A stretch of DNA of 64,000 nucleotides, taken from assembly GCA_904063045.1 (NCBI GenBank), contig CAJFCJ010000020.1, positions 302,916-366,915 of the forward strand, in the 5' to 3' direction. Below are positions 6,232 to 46,859 of the stretch, piece by piece. The DNA is from Dimorphilus gyrociliatus (taxonomy: Eukaryota; Animalia; Annelida). Position 1 is the stretch's first letter; every line of letters starts with the position of its first letter. A program made the translations under genes and the position numbers. The notes under the pieces were generated by a model, which was not told the DNA's origin, ran no database searches, and saw only the letters and a program-made list of their open reading frames with translations.

Positions 6232-8237
6232 TGAGCAAATAGCAAATTTAAAAACGTTTTTTTACGCTGCATTTGTAACCTCATTCTACTTTTTATTTAA
6301 AATACATTAAAACCTCTAAAGTAATCTTTAATCAAAACTTTTATTACCAGTATTCAATCTGTAGTACATATTATATAGTTATATATAGTTTTTCCCTTGA
6401 AAATAATCAGCTAGCAATCTCATAGTTGATTTATTTAGCTGTCAATGATCAAATATAAGTAAACAATCCGTTTCATATTGATATTAAAGATTTTAACATA
6501 GTCTTGTTTATTATTCTTGATAAATTTTTACAATATTTTCTATTTATTTAACTATTTTGTTTACATTTAGAAACGTATTAATCATTTATAATTCATATAT
6601 ATTTTATGTTCAAAGATAAGGGTCAAAAAACTCTGCAGAGCTGAATAAAGAGATTATTTTCGCTTAGTATATATTTTTAAAAGTATTCTAATCATAGTTT
6701 TGATTTCGCTTGTTGAAATGTGAGAAGAAAACTCATTTAACAGGTCAAAATCAGACATCTGGGTCATTCAAATTTTCTACTGAATATTAAAATAAATAGA
6801 AAATTAGTAAGAGCGTGACTTGAAATTTGAAAATTTAGTTCTTGACTTTGTAAAAAAAGTATCTTTATTTAAATTTAATTGAATAAACATTGTAATATGA
6901 CCGATGCATCTAGTGGGTAATATTTTATTAGTTAATTGAAGTTTCTAAAGACTTTATATTGTACTAAGAACTCATAAGGATACATATATTTTAATTCATT
7001 AATTAATCATTAATTATGTGTCTTTAGACAAGGGGGTAACTGATCATGAGACGAAGATGGAAATCAAAAGGGATGTGGTTGTGGAAATAATCCGGAAACT
7101 CTAATAAACTCGATCCTTCTCATTGAGAACACTATTTTATAACCAAGTTTCTTAATTACTTCTATTAGAAGATAAAGGAGGTGTGTTAAGTCAGTTAGTA
7201 GTTTCATTGAATAAATAAGATTCACAATAAAGAAAGCGACAATTTCCGTATCCTTGTCGTAGAGAAGTTGTGATTTTCCTATAATTTTTGACAAAGTAGT
7301 TATAAATAGAGTACATAGGAAAGATATATTTTTCTTTTAGACCTCTAGCGATTCGAACTTATTCCATGCTTTTATGCGTGAAACTATAACACAAAGAATA
7401 TAGGATTTTTAAATGAAGTATGAATGCAATAAGTACATTTTTAATATTGAAGTGGTATCATTCCTATAGATATCTTAAAATAGTACCCAATAATGCTCAA
7501 TATACTGTATTTTAGATTATCTCATTATGATTATCATAGCGAATTGTCTAATTTCAATATCTTTATTTTATACTAAACTAATCCATAAGAATTGTGTATT
7601 AATAGAGAGGGAGTGTTTAAATTAGGCAAAAAATTGGTACTCACTAACCTCTTGTATTTATTTTGGGTATGTCTTCAATCGAGGTCTGAGTAAACAAAAA
7701 CCATTTTTCCTTATACTTTTGCAAACTAAGAATTAATAACATTATATAACAATATTTATAAAAAATGCTATATATTAATACACTCTATAATTATATAAAT
7801 AGCTTAAAAAATATTATTTTGGCTCCATCTATCGGGTATAATGATTATAATTGTAAACAATTACTTAGAGCTTAGATTATTTTAATAGCGTAGAAAAGGA
7901 AAGAAGAAAATTAGTTATGTTATTATAAAGTTTTTTTTATATATATTACAGATTTGTTACAGCTTTAATAGATGATTATGAAAGAAGTTTTATTGATTTC
8001 TACATAATATCTTTCTCTAAACGTGTTTGAATTTTAAAATGATACAAAATAACTTAAACTATTCCAAAAAATATTAGTTAAGTGCAAGTCGTGATGAGAG
8101 CTCGGAATATACGACAAGGCTATTCGTGATTTGATAAAATATAGACCAAATTATTGAACTTGCCTTTATAAGAACCTCGAATTGATCGGGTTGCTTATAT
8201 CACCTTCTAATTTCATTCAGAACAGTTGAAATTAATC

Positions 8238-8588
8238 ATGAATTCTCTTTCAATTGTTTGTATCGTGGCTTTGGCATTGTGTAAGTAGATTTATTCTATA
8301 CTTTTACAATTATAAATCATTAATTATAGTACTTTTTATTTTATAGTCGCCTGTGCTTACTGTCAGGAAGGTCGAACTGGAGCAACGGGAGCAACAGGCT
8401 GGGGAAGAACGGGAGCAACTGGAGCAATGGGTTTTACTGGTATGACCGGTGCGCCCGGACCAGCCGGTCCAGCCGGTCCACCCGGTCAAGGAGGATTTGG
8501 AGGTAATGTGGACAGCCGTGGAAAACTTGACAGTGGAAAACTAACCTGTTTCTTAAGCTGTTTGAATGAGAAATGCGGAATTCTGTAG
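8238..8588 (+). CDS. Mini-collagen-like secreted protein A (94 aa)
   Basis: Exons 8238-8280, 8347-8588: [94 protein letters not shown]. Confidence 0.92.
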
Positions 8589-9249
8589 ATTGAATACTAT
8601 GAAAATTTACAATAAATGTAACTTTTAAATTCTTTTTCTTTCCCATTTTTCTGTGATCTGAATAAAATAATTTGCTTGAAAAAACTTGCAAAGCATCTGA
8701 ACGAATATTTATTAGTTTTTGATCTAAGATTCAACTGCAAAGGGTATAAATCGAAAAAAAAACAGTCTAAAAAATTATTTAGATGTTTCAACAGTCTTAA
8801 TATAAAAGATATATTTTATGATTACATCTAAAAATACTGTATTCTAAGAGACCATTTACTATGGTCAATTTCCTATTATAAAAGTGAATTAGAGAATTTT
8901 ATCTTATAATAAAGCTCATTTCATATTGTCATTAAACTAATGACATCAGGGCTTCACATCGGTATTTCAGCAGTATGTACTGAAAATTTAAACTAATGTA
9001 TATTGCAAACTACAAAATTACGTGAGTTATAGCTGAAGCTGAGCGTTGGTTATAAGAGAAAGGAATTTTTTCCAGCATGTTCCGGTCCACATTTAAATGA
9101 GGTGTCGTGAGAGCCAGCTGTGAGCAGATTATACTTCGTGACTACCAAATAGGTTTGATAAAGAGATATTTTACTATAAAAACACTAAAAGACTCTAGTT
9201 TCATTTGAAGGATCTCGTGCTTAGGTCCTTTAAAGAAATAAGATTTAGC

Positions 9250-9755
9250 ATGAAATCATTTATATTTGTTGGCATTTGTTTGGCAGCCTTTGGTAAACTT
9301 TAAATCATTTATGAAAAAAAGTTGCACGTTATTTTCTCAATATTAATAAAGATTCTTTCAGTGGCCTTGTCCAGCTGCCAGAGGGGTGATGTTGGAAGAA
9401 TGGGACCAACTGGTGCAACTGGTGAACCTGGTCGACCTGGTCGGGGCGATACAGGTAGTACTGGAAACACTGGACCATCGTACAGAGGTCCAAAAGGACT
9501 TGATGGCAGACAAGGTGCAACAGGACCACAAGGAATGCCAGGACCAGTAGGACAAAGAGGCTCACCAGGTGAAACACTTAGCGGCAGTAGTTCTTTCGCT
9601 TGGACTCCAGAGCGAGGTATGAATGAAAGTGTAAATTTTAAAAATAAAAAAGTTAAAATATAATATTTGTTTTGGAAGGTTATGGTGTAAAACCTGGATC
9701 ACAAGGAGTTGGATGTTTCCTTCAATGCCTGAAAAATGATTGTGATTTATTGTAA
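9250..9755 (+). CDS. Mini-collagen-like secreted protein B (124 aa)
   Basis: Exons 9250-9292, 9362-9616, 9679-9755. Signal MKSFIFVGICLAAFVALSSC-Q; Gly-X-Y blocks of 6, 4 and 10 triplets; C-terminus GCFLQCLKNDCDLL*. Confidence 0.92.
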
Positions 9756-10952
9756 ATCTCCGATAAAATTGAATATGAAATTTGAACGAAAACCGATACT
9801 TTGAAATTTGCTGCAAGATTAGAAAATTATATCTTTTCCTACTGTGAAACTCTCTTTCTCCTTTGTCTTTGAAGAGTATGTTTTGTCTTGAATAAAGTAT
9901 GTTATAATTCAGAAAAATGATCTTTTTTATACATCTTCTCTGTGTAAGTATAGTAGGTTATACTAATTTGTTCAGTAAAATGAATTTTCCTTCCATTAAT
10001 TACACAAATTATTGTTATTATTTTCATCCTAAAAACAATCTGTTTCGGTTAATTCATAATGAATTGATAAGATTAGGATATTATAAAACTCTCTACGACA
10101 ATGTATTTTAATTAACTTCAACATAATCGCTTTAATCTGGAATTTCTTTTTAAAAAGTTAATTAATCATATTATATTTAAAGATTATTATCTTTGGTGAA
10201 AAACAAAGTTGATATAGTTATCCTTTCCCTGCAATTCAATGTTTAATTTAAAAGATATTTAAAAATATGAAAAATACTTCGCTAGATGGCATCCGTAGCT
10301 GCTAACTTTATAGCTTATCTGAAAGAAATATAAAATTCATTTTATTAACTAAAATTGAAGAAAAATCTCTAAATTCTTATGTTTTTTAAAGTAGCCAAAT
10401 ATCTTAATTGATTATTTTCTGCAAAATAGATAGTAGGTGATTTTCATAATGAAAGCGTCTACAATAAATAATGAAAAAACATTTAAGCTTGAATTTTCTA
10501 CCATTTTCTGAAATTCCTTAAATATTTTTATAACTAAATTGAAGCATTGGTTTTTAAATACCGTAAACTAATTTATTTTTTAAAAAATTCTGTTTAAAAC
10601 CTTTATGATGTTATACTTCCAGCTAAACTCCTTTATAGGTGTATCATTAATATTAGCATATTTAGCTCTAAAATAGTTATAATATGGTAATTAACACAAT
10701 CTAGAAGATAAAACTTTAAATCTTCTCGAGTGTGAAAATGGAATCACGCATGTATATTAACCTTTTCTCTTTTCAAAAATTTGAAAAACATTATTCCAAA
10801 ATTCTCGTGATCTAAAATTGACCTTAAATTCAAAACATTCGTGACACAATGTAGGCCAAAAAATTTTACCTCTGGCATATAAAGGCCAGTGAAGTCCTGA
10901 GTTTCAGTCAATGTATCCTGTGGTCTTAGACTCAACCAGTTGAAGTTTAATA

Positions 10953-11321
10953 ATGGATTCACTTAAAATTGTTTGTTTGATGATTTTAGCATTTTGTAAG
11001 TAGTGCATTATATATATTTTAAAGTTGAGTATTGGTAATTGTTATACTTTTTGTTTTATAGCTGCTTGCGCCTTCTGTCAGGAAGGTCAAACTGGAGCAA
11101 CGGGAGCAACAGGCTGGGGAAGAACGGGAGCAACTGGAGTAATGGGCTTTACTGGTTCGCGTGGTCGACCCGGTCCAGTCGGTCCACGCGGTCCACCCGG
11201 TCCACCCGGTCAAGGAGGAAAAGGCGGATTTGGAGGTAATGTGGACAGCAGTGGAAAACTCGACTATGGAAAACTAACCTGTTTCTTGAGCTGTTTGAAT
11301 GAGAAATGTGGAATTCTATAA
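10953..11321 (+). CDS. Mini-collagen-like secreted protein C (100 aa)
   Basis: Exons 10953-10995, 11062-11321. [33 protein letters not shown]...GPRGPPGPPGQGGKGGFGGN...LTCFLSCLNEKCGIL*. Confidence 0.92.
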
Positions 11322-11485
11322 AATGAACAAAATGAACTTTTTCAAGACAAAATATATTCGTTAATGATATTTTCAATCTTTCGATAATTACTATGATTAT
11401 TACTTTTATTAAAATATATCCTAATAAACTGAAATGTACCAAATCTCTGTTTTATAGTATATACATTAACTAAGTGTCGTACAGT

Positions 11486-11518
<33 letters not shown>

Positions 11519-12250
11519 CGCACGGTTGCAATTGGTGAAAATGTTAATATACAATCTTTGATGAGAAAAAATTATAAGCTCCCTTCTAATCATCATATTA
11601 TGAATCTCCTAAAGTGATAAGAGAGATAAAGATATAATAAAGTGTAATTTCAAAGAAATAGAATACTTAATTTGTTCAAAAATATAAGGAAATATAAAAT
11701 TTCTGGTGGATTGGTCAAAAAATATCCAACATTTATTGAATAAATTACATAATAGAGCATCATGCTATGTAGTATAAACAAGAAATGATTATTTAACAAT
11801 TTACTATTAAAAAATGTATTTATTTATTTTCAGAGTACTGAACACATATCTGAAAAGTATTTCTGAAAGATGTACTGTGTCTACAATGTGTTCTTATTTG
11901 TTAAATACTTTTTTGGGCTATATTTTTTAATTAATATAGAAATAGTTCAGAAATCTAGAATACATAATTTTTCAAAGGTTAATTAATTGGTATTCCGTAC
12001 TTAACTTTCGAGATTTTCAACTCTCAGTTTAGCAAATAAATACAAAGATTTTGTAGTTTCAGTTACATGTTCGTTCACATATGCAAAGCATATTAAAATT
12101 AAGTGTCGTGAGAGCCAATCGTGAACAGACTACACTTCGTGACTAGAAAGGAAGGCCAAACAAAGACCTATCGTCTTATAAAAGGGCAGAAATTTATTCG
12201 TTTCATATCGAGAGCTGCAAGGGAGGTTCAATCGTAAATTAATACTTAGT

Positions 12251-12756
12251 ATGAAATCATTAATATTTGTTGGCATTTGTTTGGCAGCCTTTGGTAAACT
12301 TTAAATCATTTATGAAAAAAAGTTGCACGTTATTTTCTCAATATTAATAAAGATTCTTTCAGTGGCCTTGTCCAGCTGCCAGAGGGGTGATGTTGGAAGA
12401 ATGGGACCAACTGGTGCAACTGGTGAACCTGGTCGACCTGGTCGGGGCGATACAGGTAGTACTGGAAACACTGGACCATCGTACAGAGGTCCAAAAGGAC
12501 TTGATGGCAGACAAGGTGCAACAGGACCACAAGGAATGCCAGGACCAGTAGGACAAAGAGGCTCACCAGGTGAAACACTTAGCGGCAGTAGTTCTTTCGC
12601 TTGGACTCCAGAGCGAGGTATGAATGAAAGTGTAAATTTTAAAAATAAAAAAGTTAAAATATAATATTTGTTTTGGAAGGTTATGGTGTAAAACCTGGAT
12701 CACAAGGAGTTGGATGTTTCCTTCAATGCCTGAAAAATGATTGTGATTTATTGTAA
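12251..12756 (+). CDS. Mini-collagen-like secreted protein D (124 aa), near-identical copy of B
   Basis: Exons 12251-12293, 12363-12617, 12680-12756. Offset +3001 from B; only the codon 4 difference (TTT F vs TTA L) was seen. Confidence 0.92.
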
Positions 12757-13732
12757 TTCAAGTGTTGGAAAAATAAAAGTCGAAAAACGAAACCCAAAGT
12801 TAATTTGGAAATATGAAGAAAAACTCTACAGCATGATGTTTCATACTCTATTCTTTTTTTATTTACATATTTGTATTGAATATATTTTGTCTTGAATAAA
12901 CAAAATTCTAAACAAAATTACAAACTTTGACTAGTTTTGATAGTTATTAAATAAAGTACTGTTGCCAAAGCAAATTTATAGAGTATGAAAATTTTTTCGT
13001 TCATATTAGAAATCAGAAAAAGCCTTTTAATACAATTTTCAACATTTTAAAACGATTTTTGCTTATATTGTTTACTATTCTGACAAGTAAGAAGAAAATA
13101 CACCCTAAAGTTAGACTTTATCACCATTGGCAAAAAGTCTATTTGTAATATACTATTAGGAGTAACGTCTAAGAAAATTTATGTAGATAACCCTACATTT
13201 TTGTTAAATGTTGGAATTTGTTGGAAGTTTTCATGAGTTATAAATTAATTTAATTTTAAAAAGCAAAAATTATGGTTAAATCCTGAAGTTTGTAATATAT
13301 CTAATGTAACGAGTGATACTGTTGCTAATTGCCTCTGTATAGTTATTCTTTAAACCCTTTAAAAGAAACTTAAAAAATTGTTTTGTAATATAGATATTGT
13401 ATTTTTTCAGATATGAAATAAATAAACCTAACGAATATGTTAATTTATTGCATTAAATATTATCTGTAAATAATGATGTTATAAAAGACTGAAACATTTA
13501 CTTTAAAAATAATATTCAAAGCAAAATGAGATTGAGGTTTAATGTAGGTAAATCAACAACGCCGATTGTTATAGAAAAGGTCGAATCGTGAGCGATAAAT
13601 ATATGCTGAACGAGTTCGTGAGTTGGAACTGGGTTAAAATTTGCATATTATCGAAATATAAAGAATTGAAATAAACTTTTAGCCTCATACTTCAGTGTGT
13701 TTAGCAGGAGAGAACCTCAAGTATAATTCACC

Positions 13733-14140
13733 ATGAATTCTGTACTTCTCTTTTGTTTCTTAGGTTTTATCCTTTGTAAGTAATACTTCTATTTTTTTAT
13801 TTATTACTTCTATATTTAATCAATTACAGTTGCCGGCTCAAATTGTCAAAAAGGCTATACCGGTGATACTGGACCAGAAGGACCTACTGGAGCGACTGGA
13901 GCAAGAGGACATGGTAGTACAGGCGCCACCGGATTAAATGGAAGACCGGGATATGGTAGAATGGGCGGAACTGGATATACTGGTTACACCGGAGATCGTG
14001 GAGATTCTGGCATTTTAGGACCAAAAGGCTTCAAAGGAGCTCCAGGATATGCGTCAAACAGCCAAGGTTACGGTTCTGTAGATTCTACCAGATTTGGGTG
14101 TGTTTTGTCCTGCATGGATGAACCATGTGGAATTGCTTAA
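13733..14140 (+). CDS. Mini-collagen-like secreted protein E (117 aa, Tyr-rich)
   Basis: Exons 13733-13775, 13830-14140. MNSVLLFCFLGFILFAGSNC-QK; Gly-X-Y blocks of 6, 4 and 11 triplets; C-terminus FGCVLSCMDEPCGIA*. Not in the ORF track. Confidence 0.92.
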
Positions 14141-15301
14141 AGAAAATGAAAACAAACTATTCAAGGCAAAATATATTTGTAAAATTCTTACCTAATCTTA
14201 TTTCTAAAATTCTTTCTTTTATGTTACCAAATACAAAATTTAAAAATAAACATTTTTAAAACTTAGTTCATTTATATTCATCCTAATACAAAACACTGTA
14301 ATAAACTCCCATCTAGATTACTTAAGAAACATCCATCAATTGTAGAATGCCGATGTAAACTTAATTATTATTAAGACTATCATAAATTGTAAATTTAGGC
14401 AAATTCCATCTTTATAAGGCATATTATGAAAAAAGAGTAAAAATGATACACTTCATGACATACAAAAATGCCCAAAAAATACTTTAAATAAAAAGTTCTA
14501 AAAGCGACTGACTACCTGATTTAAACTTTGCTCCTTTTACATGATGTAAATAGTCCATGATCTTATATAATATTAGAAAATTTTACTTCAGCATTCTATA
14601 GTTCACATAGTGTTTCAATATAATTAATAAGAGCAACTTTTTCAGAAGTTAATCAAATTTTAGATAAATAAAAGTAGATGCGCATCTTCGATTAAATTAT
14701 AACTAATAAATAATGCACTAAACTAATTAATTAGATGTAGAAAATAGACAAAAAAATTGTCGAATATTCAATATAAATGATTTTTAGGATAAACGGAGAG
14801 TTGGGAATATCTTTTTTCAACCGAAAGTTGAAAAATCGTGACAAAATCCTAATACAATAGAAAGGAAAATCGATTGTAATACGTCGTGTTATGCAAAAGG
14901 TATATTAGTACAAGTATTTAATACTTTAATAAACTTTTCAAAGTTTTTATGAACAATTTAAAGATTCTATTCGTATAATAACTCTTAAGGTATGAAGAAA
15001 ATGCTTTTAGTCGTGAAAAGTAGTATAATCAAAGTCCTAGCTTCGTTGTCACTATTTATTCATTAAACATCCAAAACGGATGTGGCAAAAGGTAAAAGTT
15101 TTCAAGAAAATAAAAGACCATAGGAAAGATTTTTTAGGATCTCGGTCGTGAGGAGAGAGGGAAATATTGCATGTAATCGTGATATCCTGAGTAGGCTAAA
15201 ACTCTCACATATCGTTATAAAAGCTGAGAAGATTGTCCATTTCTCTTATACTTTTCGAGGTTTTCCAATAAGCTACAAGATAGTACTTCAGTAGAAAAAT
15301 T

Positions 15302-15670
15302 ATGAATTCTCTTTTAATTGTTTGTATCATCGCTTTGGCATTGTGTAAGTAGATTTATTCTATATTATTACAATTATAAATCATTAATTATTGTACTTTT
15401 ATTTTTTTAGTTGCCTGTGCTTCCTGTCAGGAAGGTCGAACTGGAGCAACTGGTGCAACAGGCTGGGGAAGAACGGGAGGAACGGGAGCAATGGGTTTTA
15501 CTGGTATGACCGGTGCGCCCGGACCAGCCGGTCCACGCGGTCCACCCGGTCCACCCGGTCGAGGAGGAAATGGCGGATTTGGAGGTAATGTGGACAGCAG
15601 TGGAAAACTCGACCATGGAAAACTAACCTGTTTCTTGAGCTGTTTGAATGAGAAATGTGGAATTCTATAA
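15302..15670 (+). CDS. Mini-collagen-like secreted protein F (100 aa)
   Basis: Exons 15302-15344, 15411-15670; A-like sequence ending LTCFLSCLNEKCGIL*. Confidence 0.92.
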
Positions 15671-16616
15671 AATGAACAAAATGAACTTTTTCAAGAAAAA
15701 ATATATTCGTCAATGATATTTTCAATCTTTCGATAATTACTATGATTGTTACTTTTATAAAAATACATTTTAATGAACTGAAATGTAAAATATCTCTATT
15801 TTATGGTATATACATTAAACGGATGTTATACAGTCTATAAATTCATAGTACATTTTGCACTCGGTGAAAATTTAAACAATATATAACTTGAATTAAATTA
15901 CAAAGAATATGCCAAATATCATAGCATGGCGAATCTTGTAATTGAAAATACTGAGAACTTGTAAATTTCAAAATGTTCCAAATCCTAAATCTCTTTTTAG
16001 CTAGTAGTATAGCATATATTCATATTTTTGAAGACTAGTAAACGACAATTGCTATTTAGGTTACTTTACATCATTCAATATACAGTCCTCTATTTTGTGT
16101 GGTGAAAATTCGTGACTTTCCAAAAGAGTAAACAACATGTGGCTAAACATTTTAGAATATTATTATCATTGAAAAATATTTCAAAATTTAAGCATTCAAA
16201 AATATTTCTGTTAGTGCTAAAATATAAATATTTAGCATCTGTTATTAGGTGCAGAATACATAAATAAATCTATTAGATCTTTTACTCTAATCTGCCTTTT
16301 GTTTTAAGCAATTATTAACGATTGAAAAGTGCAAAGTTATTTTTTTTCAAAATTAAGCAAAACTATTTGAAATTGGGAATCATTTCATTGTCTAACTTCT
16401 AAGATACAAAATGAAATAAGAAAATTGTATTAAAATATTTCCGATTTAAACAGTCTGAGGTTAAGGGCACAGTCGTGAGAGAAGAGACTTTTTCGCACAG
16501 CGAAATTCGTGATATTTCATATAGGCCTATATTCCTCTTTTTTAGTATAAAACCTAAAAGGATTGGCAATTTCCCTCATACTTTTCAGAATTTTTACCAA
16601 GTTAAGTAGAAAAGTT

Positions 16617-16994
16617 ATGAATTCTCTTTCAATTGTTTGTATCGTCGCTTTGGCATTGTGTAAGTAGATTTATTCTATATTTTTACAATTATAAATCATT
16701 AATTATTGTACTTTTATTTTTTTAGTTGCCTGTGCTTCCTGTCAGGAAGGTCGAACTGGAGCAACTGGTGCAACAGGCTGGGGAAGAACGGGAGGAACGG
16801 GAGCAACTGGTCCAATTGGTGTTGCTGGTATGCCCGGTGCGCCCGGACCAGCCGGTCCACGCGGTCCACCCGGTCCACCCGGTCGAGGAGGAAATGGCGG
16901 ATTTGGAGGTAATGTGGACAGCAGTGGAAAACTCGACCATGGAAAACTAACCTGTTTCTTGAGCTGTTTGAATGAGAAATGCGGCATCCTATAG
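16617..16994 (+). CDS. Mini-collagen-like secreted protein G (103 aa)
   Basis: Exons 16617-16659, 16726-16994; A/F-like with an extra triplet (GPI GVA GMP); ends LTCFLSCLNEKCGIL*. Confidence 0.92.
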
Positions 16995-17838
16995 AGAAAA
17001 GACATTAAAAACATTACAACGTTTTAAATATATTTACAATAATTAATGTGAAAATATTCATAAATCAGTAATAAATACAAAATCTTTACAAAAGATAACT
17101 TTCATTTTTGAAATGTTTTAAAGAAAACTGGTAGATTAATGAAATTTAAAAAAAAGATTAAACAATACATATTAGTTATAGTAAAGTAAAATTGTAATAT
17201 AACATATTAGAGATTTTACTCTAAATAATTCACTTTTAGAAATTTAGAAAGAGTAAATGATTGTTCATTCTTTTTAAAAGAATATTCAATTTTTTAATGT
17301 TTCATTTATTAAACACTACTTAATCAGTCTGTTTTTATCATTAGAAATAATGAGATACAACATTTTAATCGAATTTAACAATGATATATAAAATTAGTAT
17401 ATTTAAAATAAAAGTAACCAGTAATTACATGTTTTAGTAAAAATACGATATATGGAAATTTTATAGCTTAATTGAAGCTATCTTATGCTTTTGGTTTGTT
17501 TTTCGGAATAAGATGATATTTCTAAAAGAACTTTCTTCTTTATTTCATCTAATTCTGTCCTGGCTATGTTTCAAATTGACATATAATCTAATTTTTGTAT
17601 TTCCATTAAAACAATTATAATTTATATTATCAATAAAAGTGTACTTTGATGAAGTTCAAGTTTTGAAAAAATTTTCAGATTTCTACCATATAGTCGTGAT
17701 TGAAAATATTGTTGTGCAGTATAGAGTTCGTGATATTACTTGTAGGCCTATGTTCATATTCTTATTTATAAAGGCTTGAAATACGCCAGAGTGCTTATTT
17801 CTATCACAATATTCAAGTGAAAATCTTCGAAAAAAGTT

Positions 17839-18242
17839 ATGAATTTTCTCCCAATTATCTGTATCATTGCTTTGGCTCTTCGTAAGTAGACTAGCTTATA
17901 TGACAAAAATATTATATTTCAACTAGCATTTCTAAAATTCCAGTAACAGTTGCCAATTGCCAAAAAGGTTGGCCTGGGCCTACAGGTCCCACTGGAGCGA
18001 CTGGAAATACTGGAGAAGGCAGAACAGGTGCAACCGGAGCAACAGGGGCGACAGGACAAGGCATACCCGGTGACAATGGAAACATAGGACGTAAAGGAGA
18101 AAAAGGTTTTCGCGGTGCCACAGGACCTCGAGGACCAAGAGGTTTGCCAGGCGGATTCAATGAAGCAAACCAAAGTCCAGCAGATTCCGGGAGACTCTCT
18201 TGTTTCGTAGCCTGTTCGAGACAAGAGTGCGGTCTCTTTTAA
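17839..18242 (+). CDS. Mini-collagen-like secreted protein H (113 aa)
   Basis: Exons 17839-17881, 17944-18242. [22 protein letters not shown]; Gly-X-Y blocks of 5, 4 and 11 triplets; C-terminus [15 protein letters not shown]. Confidence 0.92.
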
Positions 18243-20287
18243 AGAAAATCAGCAAAAACTATTCAAGACAAATTATATTCATGAATTATATTTTATAATT
18301 AAAATTTTCCTTTTCTTTCAAATAATAAAATAAATAAACACGTAATCTTATTAGTTGAAATTATCTAGTTCCTATTGAGTTTACTAAAGATTTATAGTAA
18401 AATTTTAAAGACGATAAATTTCTTTTAAGTTTCTTTTGAATTATAGAAAAGTTATTAACAAAATTCTTAATTAATGAAAAATCTTTGAGAATATCTTGGA
18501 AGAAATTCATATGGTAATTTATACTGAGAGAATGCATAGCATGTTTAAACAATAATGACTTTCTATTTGTTAATTATAAAAAAGAAATCTTAGTATTTGT
18601 CTAGTTTATTTTATTTTATTTCAAAAGTCTTATATGCATATTTAAAAGTAAAATTGACAACTTTAAACATAAAATTTTCCCAAAAAATAACAAAACCTTA
18701 CAGTGCAATTAGTTCAAGGTTATCCAGTTTGGAAACCGAATAGGCCATAAAATGATTCGTGACGAGTTGGATAGTTTAAAAATAAGTAAAGAGGATAGGA
18801 GAGAAAGACATACATTTACACAAAATTCATATTGGAGTTATAATACATAGTTTCAAGATTAATCTTGAATATATATTCTATGAACAAAGGAAAAAATCAG
18901 TTTTGTTTGAAACAGCAAATTCCTTTAGCAAAGAACTTTATATTTTATAAACGTTTCTTTGTTTTTCATACGAGGAGAGGTATTTCTATTATTACATCTA
19001 TATTATAGACTATTGCTGTATTGTTTATTTTTCTTTGTTTAAATAATACTTTGCATAGTAATGAAAGGATTTGAGATATGTTTTTAAAACTTGAATCAAA
19101 GTTAAATACTTCATATTTTTTCTGCTAAATAATAATTGCAATTTGATATGAAGGTATATATGGTAACCTACTTTTTTTATATAATTAAAGTGTTTAATAA
19201 ATAATAATCTTCATTTTGAATAATTATATCTTTTTAATACACATTTTGTATGTAATGAATAAGATAAAATATACACTAATCATAGTTATATTAATTTCAA
19301 TTGTTCATTGGTAAAATATTCGTGACTTTAAATATAGGCAAAACTTTTAAAACAGCTTTTTTTCAAGGGTTAACTCGATCAATAATCTATTGCCGTTTCC
19401 TCATAATTTAATACAGCGAGAAGAGATTTTCATATGTTCAATTACTATATTCCTTTAATTGATATCTTACTTTCAAGTTGTAAATTAACCAATAATAAAC
19501 TAATAAAAAGTATAATATGGTTACAAATTTTGATACTGAGAATCAACTTCCCCTATGGAATAAATCCTTAATCCATAATTAAGGAGAAATAACTTTAATT
19601 GAATGAAAAGATAGAATAATCAATTAGAAGCATAGGGTATACATTATTTTAAATTACTCTTTCATTTAAATAATTCTTTATCATTTTGAAATAAAAGAAC
19701 AATACAAGTTTAAGAAAAAACGTTACCAAAGCTAAATTGAAGTACTTCAATTATTGAACTTTTGAACTTATTCATAAGTGATGCGTGATAGAGTCTGAAA
19801 AATTTGGACAAGAATTAATGCAATCCGACCACAACGTATTTAAAAATTTTGAATAGCAAGTATTTAAAGTGTACAAACTAGAGAAAAAGTATAAATTACG
19901 CAATATTTATAATTTATTCGCTAATATAGATGGAAAGATAACGATAATTTCAATTTATATTTTTTTAACACAACGTGCTTCGGAAAATATGAAATTTTTA
20001 ATATTTAGAAGTATTAGACCTATAGAAGATGCCTTATGAAAATTATACAATCAATGTACACAAACAGCAAACAGTTGCCTTAGGTAATTAATGAAAACAA
20101 ATATTGATCAATAGGTTTTTTTCAAATGGAAAGCCTGTTGTCGTGAGCAAAACATATCAAAAAATATAATTCGTGACACTATATAGGCTTCTGGTGTGTT
20201 TACAATACTTTTAAAGTATAAATTTTTAGGTCAGTTGCTTAATATCTAGTTTTTCTCCACCAAAAGTACATCGGAGCAAAAATAAGA

Positions 20288-20686
20288 ATGAAATCGTTGG
20301 CAATAATTCTTGTCTGCACTTTTATAATTTGTCAGTATTGTTAAAGTATCTTATTAAACAGCTTATTAACATTATTTTGAACTTTTCTTCAGATGTAAAC
20401 TGTCAAAACAATCCAGCACCTGGTAACTTATAATCAGTTTCTTTTAATATTTGTGAAAGTAGTTTTTTCTTTCTCTCAGACCAAACTTATGGATCACAAC
20501 AACAAACTGGACCCAATCACAATACTTGTAACTTACAAGCAAGTATGGCATATGGACCAGGTAATAATATATCTAAGACAAGAAACTTGAAATATTTAAT
20601 CTTTAATATTTTTTCCAGCCAAACTTAATCGTGATAGATTATCCCAATTTTTGAGATGCATAAATGTGAGATGTGGAATGCTTTGA
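20288..20686 (+). CDS. Collagen-less member I of the same family (73 aa)
   Basis: Exons 20288-20330, 20393-20422, 20480-20560, 20619-20686 (all introns GT-AG, phase 1; 222 nt): MKSLAIILVCTFIIYVNC-QNNPAPDQTYGSQQQTGPNHNTCNLQASMAYGPAKLNRDRLSQFLRCINVRCGML*. Confidence 0.8.
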
Positions 20687-36489: not shown

Positions 36490-38442
36490 TTAAATATACG
36501 CTTCATCCTCTTTTTCAGCAGCTTCATTGTCGTATTCCCTTAATTTCAATTGAGCAGTTTGACTCTTTCGGAAAAGGCAGGCTGTATCATCTCTTCTAAT
36601 TACCTCTCTCCTGTAAAGATATAGAAATCCGATAGATGACGCTAGTAGTAGGAATATAAGGATTGATAGTATTGTAATGACACTGACGAAAGTTTGTCTA
36701 TTCAATTTGACATAGTTATCGTCAGATGGAATATCTTGAACGCTTTCCAATTCTTTTTCGGAGCTAAATCTAATCGACATTACAACGTTATCTTCTGCAA
36801 ACTGATCTGTGGCTCTCCTCTGTCTTTTCGATGACTTTAATAATGTAGAATTTGAACATACCGACGGGTTGCATTTATTCATTTCATTCATTAGACATAA
36901 AATAACTCTACAATGTAGAAAGAAATTACTTCCCGACGAAAATTTAAAGAGTTTTATCTTTCCAGTTTCAAGCATATGAGCCTGAGAAGAATATCTTCTC
37001 CAATTATTAAGGGAGTTAAATGTATTTTGGTTCGCTACGGGACATCCTTCAGCAATTAATGGCAAACTTAGACTGTCATCATCTCCCAGAGTATACGAAT
37101 TGCTAGCTATACAATTTCGAACTTTAATTGCCCCATAAGCGTCTCTCTTATTCAAGACGATTATAAACCTAACAGAATCTCCAACTCTCATATAAGTATC
37201 ACTTGGAACTCTTTCACCGATGGTATTTTCAATGAATGTTGAAAGGTTTGGTACACTGTGAACTCCAACACTCCCTCGAGCGTGTCTGTTATAGAGATAA
37301 CGACAATGAACAGTGAATCTATTACATAAGTATTTTAATTAGTTGTTTAGAAAAATCTTACTCAATTACTCCAACGGCTTGGAAATTCGATCGAACTTGT
37401 GTTATAAATTCGCAGAATGTATCGAATATAATATCATTTACAGATGGCATATCATACTTTTGAACATAGATTTTGCTTGAATATTTTATGCTATCGGTCA
37501 TCATAATTTTTCTCATACCACAATGATCTTCTTTTAATGGTAATTGCAATAAATAAGCTCCTTTATATTTACAATATTTCTCATTTGGTCGTCCTTGACA
37601 CTTTATATCTTCCCCATGATTATTGGTATATATTCTGGAACTCGTACTTAAGTTAATACCATCATGTTGAAAATAACAAACATTCATTGTCATTGTATCA
37701 ACCCAACATTTTACATCGACTGTATAAATTAAAAATAAATATAAGTAAAAAGGAATTCTCAATAAATTATGTGTTATATGCTACCGTGAATTATCTCGCA
37801 ATTTTCTCCTGATCTGGACGCCGGGCATAGACAACCGTCCTTTAATAAATCATCATTTATATCATAGCATTTCCCTTCGTTGTTTTCGCAAATAAAACAA
37901 TTAACATCTAAAAAGGTTGTTATCATTTGGGCGCAATACTCTTCGCCGTTTTTTCGAACGTGAAGAGTATTTTGATCGCACATACATTTATGTAATCCAT
38001 CAGATGAATCTGTACAAGAACTATGTTTCTTTAAACATCGTCTTGTTTCTTTTAAGCAGTGCTCTCCTATGCCAGGTAGAAATTGACAGCTTCCATTCTG
38101 CATATGATAGCTGTCTGATTCCTTGCAGAGACATCTTTTTGATGATCCATCAACTTCGATACAGTTCAGACTGTCAATATAATTAAGGGGGTCAAATTTT
38201 TTACAATCCTCTATGGTTTGGCACGTGGAATCAGTAAAAACATTTTCGTGATTTAAGGCTGTTTTTTTGTTCTAAATGTTAATTTACTTAAAGAAAAATT
38301 CATAATAAAAGTTTTATAGTAAAATATATGCAGATTAGAGATTGTAATACAAGAGAAAATACAGAAAACATGGCGTACCTGATACAGTAGTCAAAATCAC
38401 CGTATAAGTGTAAATTTCAAGTATTAAGTCCAATTTATTCAT
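36490..38442 (-). CDS. Cys-rich/EGF plus ZP-domain type I membrane protein (~563 aa)
   Basis: Exons 38442-38379, 38258-37785, 37719-37362, 37285-36490. Signal peptide, Cys-rich modules, EGF, ZP-N, ZP-C (FFLHCRVILC), furin site KRQRR, TM ILSILIFLLLASSIGFLYLY. Last acceptor (37285 vs 37318) chosen by alignment to the paralog. Confidence 0.85.
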
Positions 38443-39226: not shown

Positions 39227-41703
39227 ATGTTGGCGAGTATATTCCATTGTCTCCGATTTAGGTCGGTTATAACTTTCTTCCTCCTTGTCTTTATTGTTAA
39301 AACTTCTGCAGGTAATTTGATTTGAGCTTCTTATTTGTTTTTTTTTAATAGAAATATTCATAATTATCGTCCGGTGATGTTTTTGCCCTTAGATCAATTG
39401 GCCCTTAGTGAACCTAAACAATGTGAAACTAATCTTGATTGCAAAACCAAGCATAGCTACTGCAAGGTTATGGATACTTCAACTGGTACATCGCAAGGAA
39501 ATACTCCTCCTACAACAATAGGTCAAGGACAGACAACTTCCATGCATATCTCAACTGCTGGAATCACTAAAAGCAATTCAGAAACAACAAAAATTGCAAC
39601 TACGAAGGCAGATGAGCTGACAACGCAAAGTGAGACGATCAATGAAACGACTACGGGAATAGCTGTGAAACCGACAACTGTTGTCGAAATAACGACTCAA
39701 AACACTCATAGCCAGGCTATAACCACTGAAGGTTCTGAAAATCACACAGAGGGAACAACGACAAACGAAACTATTAGTGAGTTAACAACCAATAAAGAAT
39801 TTACTTCCAGAGCTACTCAAACGACTGATAAAACCGGGATATCTACAACGATGAATAATGTAATCAGCACAGAAAAACAGATTACAGAGCAGTTTACCAC
39901 TGAGAAAGCAGTACTTGAAAGAACTACGTACAGTCCTTCGCCAATAAAAAGATGCGTTTGTGATAGTTCAGCAGGCTGGTTCAAAGATGGAGATACTTGT
40001 AGTGAGTTCTTTTAAAAAATAATCAATTGATTAAATTCTACCATATGTATTTATTTATTCATGAATATTATATATGCTTTATTTCGTATTGATATTCCAT
40101 TAATACTATTACTTTATCAGAAAACTATGCAGACCTATACGACCCTTGTAGTTCAATAACAATATGCAAAGTAAGACATTCCCATTGTGTCTTTGATGGT
40201 GTCAACGTACAAGGAAAAAGATGTAAATGTAAAACTGGTTATATAGATGTTCAGCATAATGGTACTCTGACCTGTGGTCAAATTATAACGCATTACGATG
40301 ACCCTACATGCAGTATATGTGAAAAGCATGAAGGTATTTGTTATAGTTCAACCGGAAACGGCAGACGAGACGGCTGTAAATGTAAAAGTTCAAGACAAGG
40401 CGTTGACTGCGAGAAATTATTGGGTAAAGAAGTTAATAATTAATCGCTTAGTTCATAAATTCTATTATTCATATTCTATTCAGTGAACGTCTATTGCTCC
40501 GTTCCCGCTAACACAATGACAATTTGTTTCAAGCCAACAAATCGATTCAATTTTAAAACTGGAAATTCTGTTTTGCATGCTAAAGGTAAAGGTAAAGATG
40601 AAGCATGCAAGGGAAAGCCAGCAGACAAAGATTCAATATGTGATAAAGATTCAATAGCACTTGTCTTATCTTGGAAAGAAGAAAATAGACGTCGTTGTGG
40701 AACAAATCACTATACTGACGGAAAAGGGGAAAGAACTTACGATAATGTTATTGTTGCAGCTGAGGATTCAAAAATAAATACACAAAATGATTTGTATTTC
40801 AACACATATTGCAAATTTAGGAATTATGTTCAAAACACATTTAAAGGCATTGCAGTTCATGCGTTAGTTTTAATATGATATTAATTGTTTCGTATTAAAG
40901 TATGTTTTTGTTTATAGAGTGCCGGGAAATGACAGAGGGGAAACGAAATTGCCAAATTTACAATTTGCAGCCGAATTTCAAACTGGAAAGCTTATTGATC
41001 CTTCGTATCCTGTTAGAGTAGGGGATAAAATTCGTTTGATAATAAAAATGACAGATGTGGAAAGTTATTCTGCAATTCTTGTTACGGAAATGACAGCGTC
41101 TAGTTCATTCACTAAACCTGATCCTAAAGCGGTAACAGTTCCACTTATTATGAATGGTTGCCCTTACGAGAACCAAAAAACATTTACTAATGAAAACATG
41201 TGGAAAGTCGCACACAACGATCCTCGTCAGCTAAGAACTGGTCTTATACGAATGTTCAAACTTTCAAAGGGTAGTTCTGTTTTCTTTCACTCAACTGTAA
41301 GAATCTGTCTTATAGGAGAAGAAATAAAATGTAAATTAGTGAGTATTGCACTTTCTCAATTATTTAATCCGAATTTTTTACTTTGTAATTATTTTTGCAG
41401 CATAACTGTACATGGCCACTTCAAAAACAACAGTCTAGGCGCAAAAAGAGAGCTTTAAAGACATCGGAAGAAATAGATACTCTAGAACTCAGATGGTATG
41501 AAGATACTGGAAACTCAAGTAACGGCGGATTAACAGCTTTATTTTGTGTAATTGCCATAGCAACTCTGGCTTTAATCGGAATAACCGTCTTTTTTGTAAT
41601 AACCAAGAAAAAGATAACTTTTAAGAAACCTGAAGTTTGGACAACTCTACCGCAAAGATTTGCTATACCAAGATTAGATCAAAATAAGCATATTAGAATG
41701 TAA
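39227..41703 (+). CDS. Cys-rich/EGF plus ZP-domain type I membrane protein with a Thr-rich mucin tract (~699 aa)
   Basis: Exons 39227-39311, 39393-40001, 40121-40423, 40484-40862, 40918-41338, 41401-41703 (2100 nt). Furin site RRKKR, TM and short tail; clear paralog of the minus-strand gene (VRVGD..R.II, PLI..GCP..NQ.TF, TG.I..FK.S.GS..F.H). Confidence 0.9.
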
Positions 41704-44382: not shown

Positions 44383-46414
44383 ATGACCGATGCAAGTTCC
44401 GCTTATTTCGGGGGTCATGGCTATGACACTGCTGCTCAAGATCACTATAGTTCGACGGCCGCTCCGAATTCTGCAGGTGAATTAATTATATAATTGTTTG
44501 TAACTACTCACTTATATAATTTGCAATAAGTTGGAATAACAAAACTTTTTGTCCCTAAAAGCGGACGTAAAAAATGGCTACTACTCAAACGATTATGGAA
44601 ATCCCGAAGCCATCCACCCAGGTCTCAACATGGATCCCATGAGTGAAAGTTATATAGGTTCTTATTTTTCCCTTCTTTTTTTCTTTGTGAACACATATAG
44701 GTGGCGCCAACTTTATTTAGTTAATAATATTATTTTTATTAATGATATATAGATAAACTACCCAACCCTATAAATACTATATTTTCAAACCCACTAAAAT
44801 GCATATTACACTTATTTACCGTAACATTTTTCAAAGTATGATAAATAATTAAAGGGCAAAGTTTCTACATATTAAGCAAAATTAATAGGTAAAAATCGTA
44901 TTAAAACGCCTAAACAGCTGAACGTACATACGAAGAACAGGTGTAGGTAGTTTTAATTAGTAAATATATTATTCCTTCTTTTAGAAAAAAAGCGCAAGAA
45001 CGAATTTATTATAATAAATTCCATGTGACGTCACTATATTTAAAATGACTATATAAGACGCCGAGTCCGTAATGCAGGACCGCTATGATTCGTACTGAAG
45101 AAAACATGACTAGAAATCCATTTTTTTTCCCCTGGACAAACTTTCCCAACTTATACTCCTATAACAATTACCTTAAAGCAAGTGACGACTGCGTTTCAAT
45201 TCTGTTAGGTAAATATATAAGTTGTTACGTAAACCTAAAAATTTGTTGTTACAATGAAAAAAAAAGTGCGCCAATGGTGTTAGTGCTCCTTCCTACTAAA
45301 TCATCCATTTCCCTTCCCTTACTTAAAGATCCTTTCTTTAAATATAGGATCGAAGAAAGAACCGTGCCTCGATAGTATACCTAGGCAATTGTGCGAAAAG
45401 TCACTGGGTCGCCCAACCTTTGGAATGAAGACTCTAGAAGCGCCGACGACTCCAGTCGTTAATTCCCTACAAATTGCTGCAGGTACTAATAGGAGTACAT
45501 ATAAATAATAAGTAAAAGCGAGACGGGGGTAGAGAGACGTGTAATAATCAAACAAAAAGCTTGTAAACTAAGAAGCCATCAGCCAATCGGCAGTGTTAAT
45601 GACTAGTGAAGAAGGATACTAAAAGAACGAGTCCTTTAATGTGTCTGATGAGGAACGCCTAATGTTTTGTTAAAGCTATAACGAACTATCACTTCTTCAA
45701 CTCGCTTAATAAGTAGTCCCTTTGCCAATCGTACGTTTCAGCTTTAATGCGACAAATACGTATACCATATTGTTTCTATAGGCGCTAATTTATAAGGTGA
45801 TTAAAAGATGCTGTCTAGACAGTCTCGTATTTCTACAGATCGTACGAAAACTTGTTTATTAAAGGGTTGCGGTTGTTTTTTTTATACTTTGTATAATTCT
45901 ATAGCTTATCTTACTACATTCCCGCATAGCGCTTAAACTCACTGAGCGGACCTACTTTTATATTTTTTTTATAATTCAATTTCTTAGAAAAAGCTGTAAA
46001 CATCCTGGAATTTACAGCAAGATGGCTTTAAAAAATATAATTAGATAAGGAACTTAGTTGCGCCTAAGTTTATCTATTGATTTGTTCGAAACAGGTCAGT
46101 CACCTGCATTAGCTCACGCTTTAGCTCTCACTTCAGGTAGACCGAATCGTCCTCGGTCAGAAAAGAAATCCGTACCAGAGGATTTGAAGGACGATAAATA
46201 TTTCGAGCGTCGAAAGAGAAATAACCAGGCTGCAAAAAAGAGTCGAGAAGCAAGGAAAGCACGAGAAGACGAGATCGCAATACGAGCAAGTTTTTTGGAG
46301 AAGGAAAATGCGATACTAAGGGCACAAGTTGCGACTCTAAGGGAGGAAGCAAATTCTTTGAGACAGCTTTTGTTGCAGAAACGTTCTCAGCAGGTTCATC
46401 ACGGTACATCCTAA
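44383..46414 (+). CDS. PAR/CES-2-type bZIP transcription factor (~214 aa)
   Basis: Exons 44383-44476, 44562-44657, 45348-45482, 46095-46414 (all phase 1; 645 nt). bZIP KKSVPEDLKDDKYFERRKRNNQAAKKSREARKAREDEIAIRASFLEKENAILRAQVATLREE of the TEF/HLF/CES-2 group. Upstream exons are less certain than the bZIP exon. Confidence 0.85.
45025..45208 (+). promoter_or_regulatory. Probable alternative promoter (CRE palindrome plus TATA) and alternative first coding exon of the bZIP gene
   Basis: GTGACGTCAC at 45025-45034, TATAAG at 45052-45057, ATG at 45085, open frame to a phase-1 donor TTA G|gtaaat at 45208 that fits exon 45348. Confidence 0.55.
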
Positions 46415-46859
46415 AAGTTTTAGAACAGACGTTAATTCACGTGCTGAGTCTATGTGCTTTTTTGAAAATCTGTTAAAAATAATTGATAGTTTTAAGATTT
46501 ATATTGCCTGTATAACATATAGATTGATGTACGTTGCATATTACAAACTTTAAAAAATTGCACAATACCTATCTATTACTTTGCTTTAGTATTTAACTTT
46601 TTATTGATTTGTTACAATTCTTTTCTTATTTATTTATTCTTTTTCGCCTTAAACTCCGGCAAGAGATACTTAATATTCGTGAATTTTTTTTAACTATTTA
46701 ATGACCAACTTCTCGTGATTTACGTTTTAAGAGATTCTTTTAAGTAAAAGTTTAATAATGGTACGAAAGTATCTTTTAAAGTCTCGTTTGAATTTATCGA
46801 TAAGCAAATATTTCAAACTACTTGAAACGGACTCCCTCTTGATGTACTTTTCGTTGGAG

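Follow-up and report, generated by a model that had tools for sequence, protein, structure and literature searches.

Background

Co-regulated tandem families of structural-protein genes with shared promoter blocks are known from insect chorion and cuticle gene clusters and from the cuticle collagens of nematodes. The present analysis concerns an array of nine tandem mini-collagen genes in the miniature marine annelid Dimorphilus gyrociliatus and the short block of DNA upstream of each start codon, in which the hexamer TCGTGA recurs. The array lies in a stretch of 64,000 nucleotides (assembly GCA_904063045.1, contig CAJFCJ010000020.1, positions 302,916 to 366,915; G000:C20:302916-366915), called the window below and numbered from its first letter; genome scans covered 77.9 Mb in 349 contigs. 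Regulation in D. gyrociliatus has been described as compact, with narrow promoters of the TATA-box/initiator type (PMC7854359).

TCGTG is bound by the Drosophila heterodimer Dysfusion:Tango (Dys/Tgo), Tango being the ARNT partner, and two conserved copies are present in the fusion-cell enhancer of CG33275 (PMC3896416). The sites of other bHLH-PAS factors are ACGTG for Sim/Trh, RCGTG for HIF, TNGCGTG for Ss/AhR and CACGTG for Clock (PMC3896416, Table 1). The response element (NRE) of mouse Npas4 is TCGTG (PMC5035142), and chromatin immunoprecipitation (ChIP) of zebrafish Npas4l gave TCGTGA as a de novo motif (10.1101/461988). The original prediction for this locus, made from the window alone, had named TCGTG as the preferred site of NPAS4/Dysfusion-ARNT, and these three sources bear it out.

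Geometry of the shared promoter

The nine genes of the array very probably have a functional cis-module in common, consisting of two TCGTGA sites, a TAGGC-like element and a TATA box at near-constant distances from one another. The elements were located as follows.

8089..8237, + strand, promoter of gene 1: TCGTGA distal at 8089 and proximal at 8124; TAGACC 8142; TATAAG 8167; ATG 8238
9105..9249, + strand, promoter of gene 2: distal 9105, proximal 9136, middle site degenerate; TAGGTT 9150; TATAAA 9175; TCA initiator candidate 9203; ATG 9250
10805..10952, + strand, promoter of gene 3: distal 10805, proximal 10839; TAGGCC 10852; TATAAA 10878; TCA 10906; ATG 10953
12106..12250, + strand, promoter of gene 4, a three-site variant: TCGTGA 12106, 12119 and 12137; AAGGCC 12152; TATAAA 12177; TCA 12205; ATG 12251
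13586..13732, + strand, promoter of gene 5: distal 13586, proximal 13616; TGGGTT 13630; TATAAA 13657; ATG 13733
15146..15301, + strand, promoter of gene 6: distal 15146, proximal 15177; TAGGCT 15192; TATAAA 15216; ATG 15302
16473..16616, + strand, promoter of gene 7: distal 16473, proximal 16507; TAGGCC 16522 within the palindrome TAGGCCTA; TATAAA 16546; ATG 16617
17694..17838, + strand, promoter of gene 8: distal 17694, proximal 17728; TAGGCC 17743; TATAAA 17767; ATG 17839
20141..20287, + strand, promoter of gene 9, the collagen-less sibling: distal 20141, proximal 20171; TAGGCT 20184; TTTAAAG 20210; ATG 20288

From gene 1 to gene 9 the distal and proximal hexamers, always on the same strand, are 35, 31, 34, 31, 30, 31, 34, 34 and 30 bp apart, that is, within the predicted 30-35 bp in 9/9 genes. 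These spacings form two classes, 30-31 and 34-35 bp, and the proposed distance of about three helical turns therefore holds only approximately. The proximal hexamer precedes the TATA box by 43, 39, 39, 40, 41, 39, 39, 39 and 39 bp, which upholds its predicted position and narrows the predicted range of 39-46 bp to 39-43 bp. A TAGGC-like element, expected in most promoters between these two, was found in all nine at 24-27 bp before the TATA box (exact TAGGC in five, one- or two-base variants elsewhere), and its distance from the proximal hexamer is looser, at 13-18 bp. In genes 7 (16522-16529) and 8 (17743-17750) this element is a perfect palindrome, TAGGCCTA. The TATA box lies 71-86 bp ahead of the ATG in the nine genes, the same range as had been predicted.

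The box reads TATAAA in 7/9 promoters; gene 1 has TATAAG instead, and gene 9 has TTTAAAG, closely followed by a TATAAA whose inclusion raises the count to 8. The trinucleotide TCA occurs at +28 to +32 from TATA in genes 2, 3, 4, 5 and 7 and at +35 in gene 1; genes 6, 8 and 9 have other pyrimidine-A initiator candidates only. The 5′ ends of RNA contigs at 10931 (gene 3) and 12234 (gene 4, abutting adapter sequence) are downstream of the predicted transcription start sites, as expected. The TCGTGA sites come in two flavours, distal GTCGTGA(G/T) and proximal TTCGTGA(Y), the −1 base being G in 7/9 distal and T in 8/9 proximal sites.

Enrichment and conservation of the sites

TCGTGA was counted 38 times in the window, as against 16.5 ± 4.0 in shuffled sequence. 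At 8.0-21.2 kb the + strand has 26 copies and the − strand 0, and the rest of the window has 12 (7 +, 5 −), in agreement with the earlier estimates of about 25 and a dozen. In an unbiased k-mer count a single 6-mer, TCGTGA, was common to 9/9 promoters, and no other reached two or more copies in every one of them, while in 2000 random sets of nine 200-bp pieces of the window no G/C-containing 6-mer was common to more than 6. Both hexamers are invariant in the alignment of the nine promoters, which has a mean column identity of 51%. Spacers, the 60 nt upstream and the TATA-ATG stretch showed 50-53% identity by a global aligner, compared with a null of 47-50% obtained from random window pieces, and they stay at random level even where paralogs match by 91-100% in their introns and coding exons (genes 1/6/7, 2/4, 3/6).

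Sliding identity profiles located near-identical tracts (90-100%), introns included, that start ~15 bp before the ATG and end at the stop codon or, for genes 2 and 4, at the last exon. The tracts are 8238-8588, 15302-15670 and 16617-16994; 9250-9758 versus 12251-12759; and 10953-11321. Promoters, 5′ untranslated regions and 3′ flanks of the paralogs that share tracts are at background identity. The transcribed cores have apparently been homogenised, most simply by gene conversion. Because the jump in identity is confined to the interval from about −15 to the stop codon, the promoters are far older than the coding parts make them look, and yet the sites have been kept. The four elements are under purifying selection and the intervening DNA is free to vary.

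The original prediction was to be given up if spacing proved no more conserved than neutral flanking sequence. The sites themselves are more conserved than their flanks; for the distances taken alone the case is weaker, the coefficient of variation of the hexamer spacing (~6%) being that of the TATA-ATG distance, and only the distances from the proximal site to TATA and from TAGGC to TATA are tighter.

Seven extra + strand TCGTGA lie between or after the units (14836, 15011, 16110, 18757, 19320, 20629 and 21101) and none on the − strand, where ~1.5-2 per strand were expected; the copy at 19320 has a TAGGC 9 nt downstream and neither TATA nor gene. Pseudogene relics were considered as the source of these seven sites, and none were found by blastn of the gene units against the intergenic pieces. 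An Rfam search of the window gave no match.

The module in another organism

Among 5.8 billion proteins, exon 2 of the array genes has a single relative, P0001, with 51% identity. The P0001 contigs stem from two public runs (SRR23372229 and SRR31984831) and do not belong to the assembly analysed here, since the genome-wide pattern described below would otherwise have picked up their promoters, which it did not. One of them (L033) carries two tandem homologous genes with the same promoter layout. The first has, in order, GTCGTGA (1003), TTCGTGA (1037), TAGGCC (1050), a TATA-like box (~1074) and its ATG (1154), with distances of 34, 37 and 80 bp between the hexamers, from the proximal hexamer to the box and from the box to the ATG; the second has hexamers at 2130, 2143 and 2161, followed by CAGGCC (2177), TATAAA (2201) and its ATG (2272), the corresponding distances being 31, 40 and 71 bp. 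The three sites of this second gene, 13 + 18 bp apart, repeat the arrangement of D. gyrociliatus gene 4 (12106, 12119, 12137), and the distal and middle sites fall within a ~30-nt block nearly identical to that of gene 4, the remainder having diverged. The TTTCA of gene 4 type in the initiator region is also kept between species. By this comparison, L033 is an independent phylogenetic footprint of the sites, their order, their orientation and their distances.

Occurrence in the genome

The full composite pattern had 8 matches in the genome, all in the array, with 1 in the control, and none in the other 77.8 Mb of the genome; gene 1 was missed because its box is TATAAG. The hexamer pair alone was found 47 times genome-wide (21 in the control), 9 of the 47 being the array promoters, and none of the remaining pairs that were inspected has TAGGC and TATA in register. 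The combination of proximal site, TAGGC and a TATA-like box gave one extra genome match, on C14, with no gene behind it. The original prediction had spoken of a whole battery and proposed a scan for further members; the genome-wide geometry scan confines the module to the nine array genes. A gene battery in the sense of a module present at unlinked genes was thus not found, the relaxed patterns being at control level or coding coincidences.

Seven pair matches outside the array were set aside as coding coincidences. They are antisense TCGTGA pairs, 30 bp apart, in six near-identical genes of one metalloprotease family at G000:C34:9693-51756 (L015-L020) and in one gene at G000:C5:3987227 (L030), and derive from the codons of the HExxHxxGxxH zinc-metalloprotease motif, with its zinc-binding HExxH. 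A look-alike of TTCGTGA-N32-38-TATAAA on C9 was likewise rejected, having neither a distal site nor a gene. The only other TCGTGA pair in the window, at 46677 and 46713, is 36 bp apart, has no TAGGC or TATA and is probably due to chance; just upstream of it an exon of PAR-type bZIP character was recognised by eye (46058-46414).

Transcription units

The units and their boundaries were modelled as follows.

8238..20686, + strand, nine transcription units: in-house exon models, with splice joints from RNA contigs
Model ends of genes 1 to 9, + strand: 8588, 9663+, 11321, 12833, 14140, 15670, 16994, 18242, 20686

In the gene models, genes 1-8 each begin with a signal-peptide exon of 43 nt, which is followed, after a phase-1 intron (GT..AG), by an exon of Gly-X-Y repeats; in a profile search with exon 2 as query this exon matches Pfam Collagen. 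Gene 9 is modelled with a 47-nt signal-peptide exon and a 303-bp intron and is without the collagen repeat; in the other genes the intron after the signal-peptide exon is 54-69 bp, the median intron of D. gyrociliatus being 66 bp (PMC7854359). In one public run, contigs lack precisely the introns that were modelled, with joints at 8280/8347, 10995/11062, 12292/12362, 12615/12678 and 13775/13830, which identifies the run as RNA and genes 1, 3, 4 and 5 as expressed and spliced in that data set. A third exon is present in genes 2 and 4, that of gene 4 being revealed by the RNA contigs, and the end of gene 4 at 12833 is the last base that its contig covers. Gene 4 intron 2 is 12616-12677, and the counterpart region in gene 2 is 9664-9758. 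In both genes the third exon is hidden by an unspliced open reading frame, and the real C-terminus differs from that of the read-through frame ending at 9663/12664.

One RNA contig joins 7976-8280 to 8347 and so spans the gene 1 promoter, including both hexamers and the TATA box; it reaches upstream by a further ~74 nt and nevertheless has the intron of gene 1 removed. This contig implies an upstream start or a read-through transcript. Upstream of gene 1, no evident gene was found at 4.5-8.1 kb of the window. Two large single-exon open reading frames near the array, at 36490-37762 (−) and 40483-41458 (+), have ZP/cuticlin-like cysteine patterns by eye, and the promoter module is in neither.

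Candidate factor for the TCGTGA sites

The first base of the hexamer is T in 19/19 promoter sites of the array (two per gene and the middle site of gene 4) and in 5/5 sites of L033, and therefore among the bHLH-PAS factors listed above only the Dys/NPAS4 class fits. When the genome was searched with Pfam PAS, roughly a dozen loci came up. An orthologue of Dys/NPAS4 is encoded on C3 at ~667-671 kb. Its bHLH exon (L060:5352-5540) has NPAS4 as best PDB match at E 5e-16, followed by AhRR at 3e-6, with a basic region near-identical to that of NPAS4, and its PAS region (L036:1156-1950) matches NPAS4 at E 6e-29 as compared with 2e-13 for AhR. ARNT is present as well (L040:1453-2004, matching ARNT/ARNT2 at E 3e-47; G000:C3:~771 kb), and a second ARNT paralog was recognised by eye at G000:C29:~232 kb (L042). 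Sim, AhR, HIF, Trh/NPAS3, Clock, Bmal, NCoA and one divergent gene were assigned by eye only; the last has an atypical basic region and lies at G000:C19:~550-553 kb (L013/L044). The best available assignment, in which we place middling confidence, would have the TCGTGA sites read by a Dys/NPAS4-ARNT heterodimer.

Readings of TCGTGA as a Su(H), Pax, T-box, bZIP, N-box or nuclear-receptor site were set aside by reasoning, as the invariant positions misfit and the flanks are unconserved. The supplements of the D. gyrociliatus genome paper do not mention Npas4, dysfusion or collagen (PMC7854359), and a literature search found no single-cell atlas of Dimorphilus.

Proposed mechanism and alternatives

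The explanation that best covers these observations as a whole, and to which roughly an even chance is assigned, is a four-element promoter read by Dys/NPAS4-ARNT through which the array is co-activated. Each gene would depend on a compact proximal promoter that occupies ~150 bp ahead of its ATG, with distal GTCGTGA(G/T), proximal TTCGTGA(Y) 30-35 bp downstream, TAGGC(C/T) 24-27 bp before TATA, and TATAAA in that order, and with a TCA-type initiator ~28-32 bp after TATA. Heterodimers of the worm Dysfusion/NPAS4 and ARNT would occupy the TCGTGA sites with the ARNT half-site (GTGA) facing the TATA box, a putative TAGGC-binding factor and TBP would act alongside, and the array would be switched on together in one secretory cell type.

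Several points weigh against this explanation. Dys/NPAS4 sites, which are usually in enhancers, are not known for a fixed orientation or a fixed distance to TATA. Single sites at TATA distance are not enriched, TTCGTGA-N32-38-TATAAA occurring 74 times genome-wide compared with 78 in the control. The difference at the −1 base means that distal and proximal sites may be non-equivalent or bound by different complexes, and the RNA contig crossing the gene 1 promoter indicates that not every transcript begins at the predicted site. The divergent bHLH-PAS protein encoded on C19, or zinc-finger factors, are possible readers.

The likeliest competitor, with a probability somewhat short of even, is a functional module whose TCGTGA sites are read by another factor, be it the divergent bHLH-PAS protein of C19 (~550 kb) with ARNT or a lineage-specific zinc-finger or other protein with a CGTGA motif. 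Constraint on the sites is shown, whereas Dys/NPAS4 enters by motif resemblance; rigid promoter-proximal geometry with distinct −1 bases is unusual for Dys/NPAS4 elements; and in one bHLH-PAS gene of the genome (L013) the basic region is atypical. The hexamer, however, is the Npas4l ChIP motif (10.1101/461988) and includes the Dys and NPAS4 cores (PMC3896416, PMC5035142), the only papers found by searching the literature for the whole word TCGTGA as a motif are that preprint and an AhR paper, and the near-identity of the orthologue's basic region to that of NPAS4 argues against a different reader. A different kind of function, in which the elements are boundary or insulator sites, or repressor sites, that keep the units separate or silent, is improbable. 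It would suit the placement of all sites on one strand, the seven additional single sites between units, which are + without exception, and the CTCF-type motifs that sit in promoters of the D. gyrociliatus genome (PMC7854359), but the tight positioning relative to TATA (39-43 bp) is typical of activator and core-promoter grammar, the genes are expressed and the motif is not CTCF-like.

Passive inheritance of the hexamers without a regulatory role, through common descent or patchy gene conversion, deserves mention since the genes are tandem paralogs and conversion has been active in the array. Conversion tracts nevertheless stop at about −15 and the promoter spacers are at random-level identity. 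Across the nine near-independent promoters, twelve invariant columns are beyond chance; moreover, the sites and distances persist in another organism where the protein is only 51% identical. This account is close to refuted.

Significance

The array may possibly be the first identified set of direct Dysfusion/NPAS4-ARNT targets in Spiralia, consisting of lineage-restricted secreted mini-collagens with a rigid two-site promoter, though we hold this only tentatively. If it is true, it would suggest that the factor ancestrally drove specialised epithelial or gland cells to secrete extracellular matrix and that its neuronal-activity and vascular programmes came later, and the natural 150-bp promoter would be a ready cell-type-specific driver for annelid transgenesis. 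Spiralian cis-regulatory logic is almost unexplored, and the match to a transcription factor whose site is known and whose orthologue is conserved makes the hypothesis directly testable. Footprinting across paralogs and species isolates, at single-base resolution and without experiment, what appears to be a complete minimal promoter made of two activator sites, a TAGGC element, a TATA box and an initiator. The locus also illustrates how coding parts can be made uniform by gene conversion while each promoter evolves on its own, with selection acting on the motifs. Its interest is moderate and lies mainly in a hypothesis that lends itself to sharp tests and in a compact promoter that may serve as a driver in a little-studied clade.

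Comparison with known systems

The Drosophila Dysfusion:Tango enhancers, such as that of CG33275, resemble the worm promoters in the TCGTG core, the presence of two sites and, as proposed, the ARNT/Tango heterodimer, and an orthologue with a conserved basic region is encoded in the worm genome. The worm sites differ in being promoter-proximal, in one orientation and at a near-fixed distance from TATA, and in recurring at nine tandem paralogs; their putative targets are lineage-restricted mini-collagens, not tracheal genes. With the vertebrate NPAS4 element (NRE, TCGTG) and the zebrafish Npas4l ChIP motif (TCGTGA) the hexamer is identical. NPAS4 acts at activity-regulated neuronal enhancers and Npas4l on endothelial and blood genes, and nothing suggests neuronal or vascular expression of the worm array.

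With the chorion and cuticle clusters the array shares tandem paralogs in which a short block of promoter is retained between diverging flanks. It differs from them in its motifs and in the unusual clarity with which homogenised coding parts stand against fully diverged promoters. The array adds a clear case to a familiar category, that of tandem paralogs presumably co-regulated through a shared cis-module of a known motif class.

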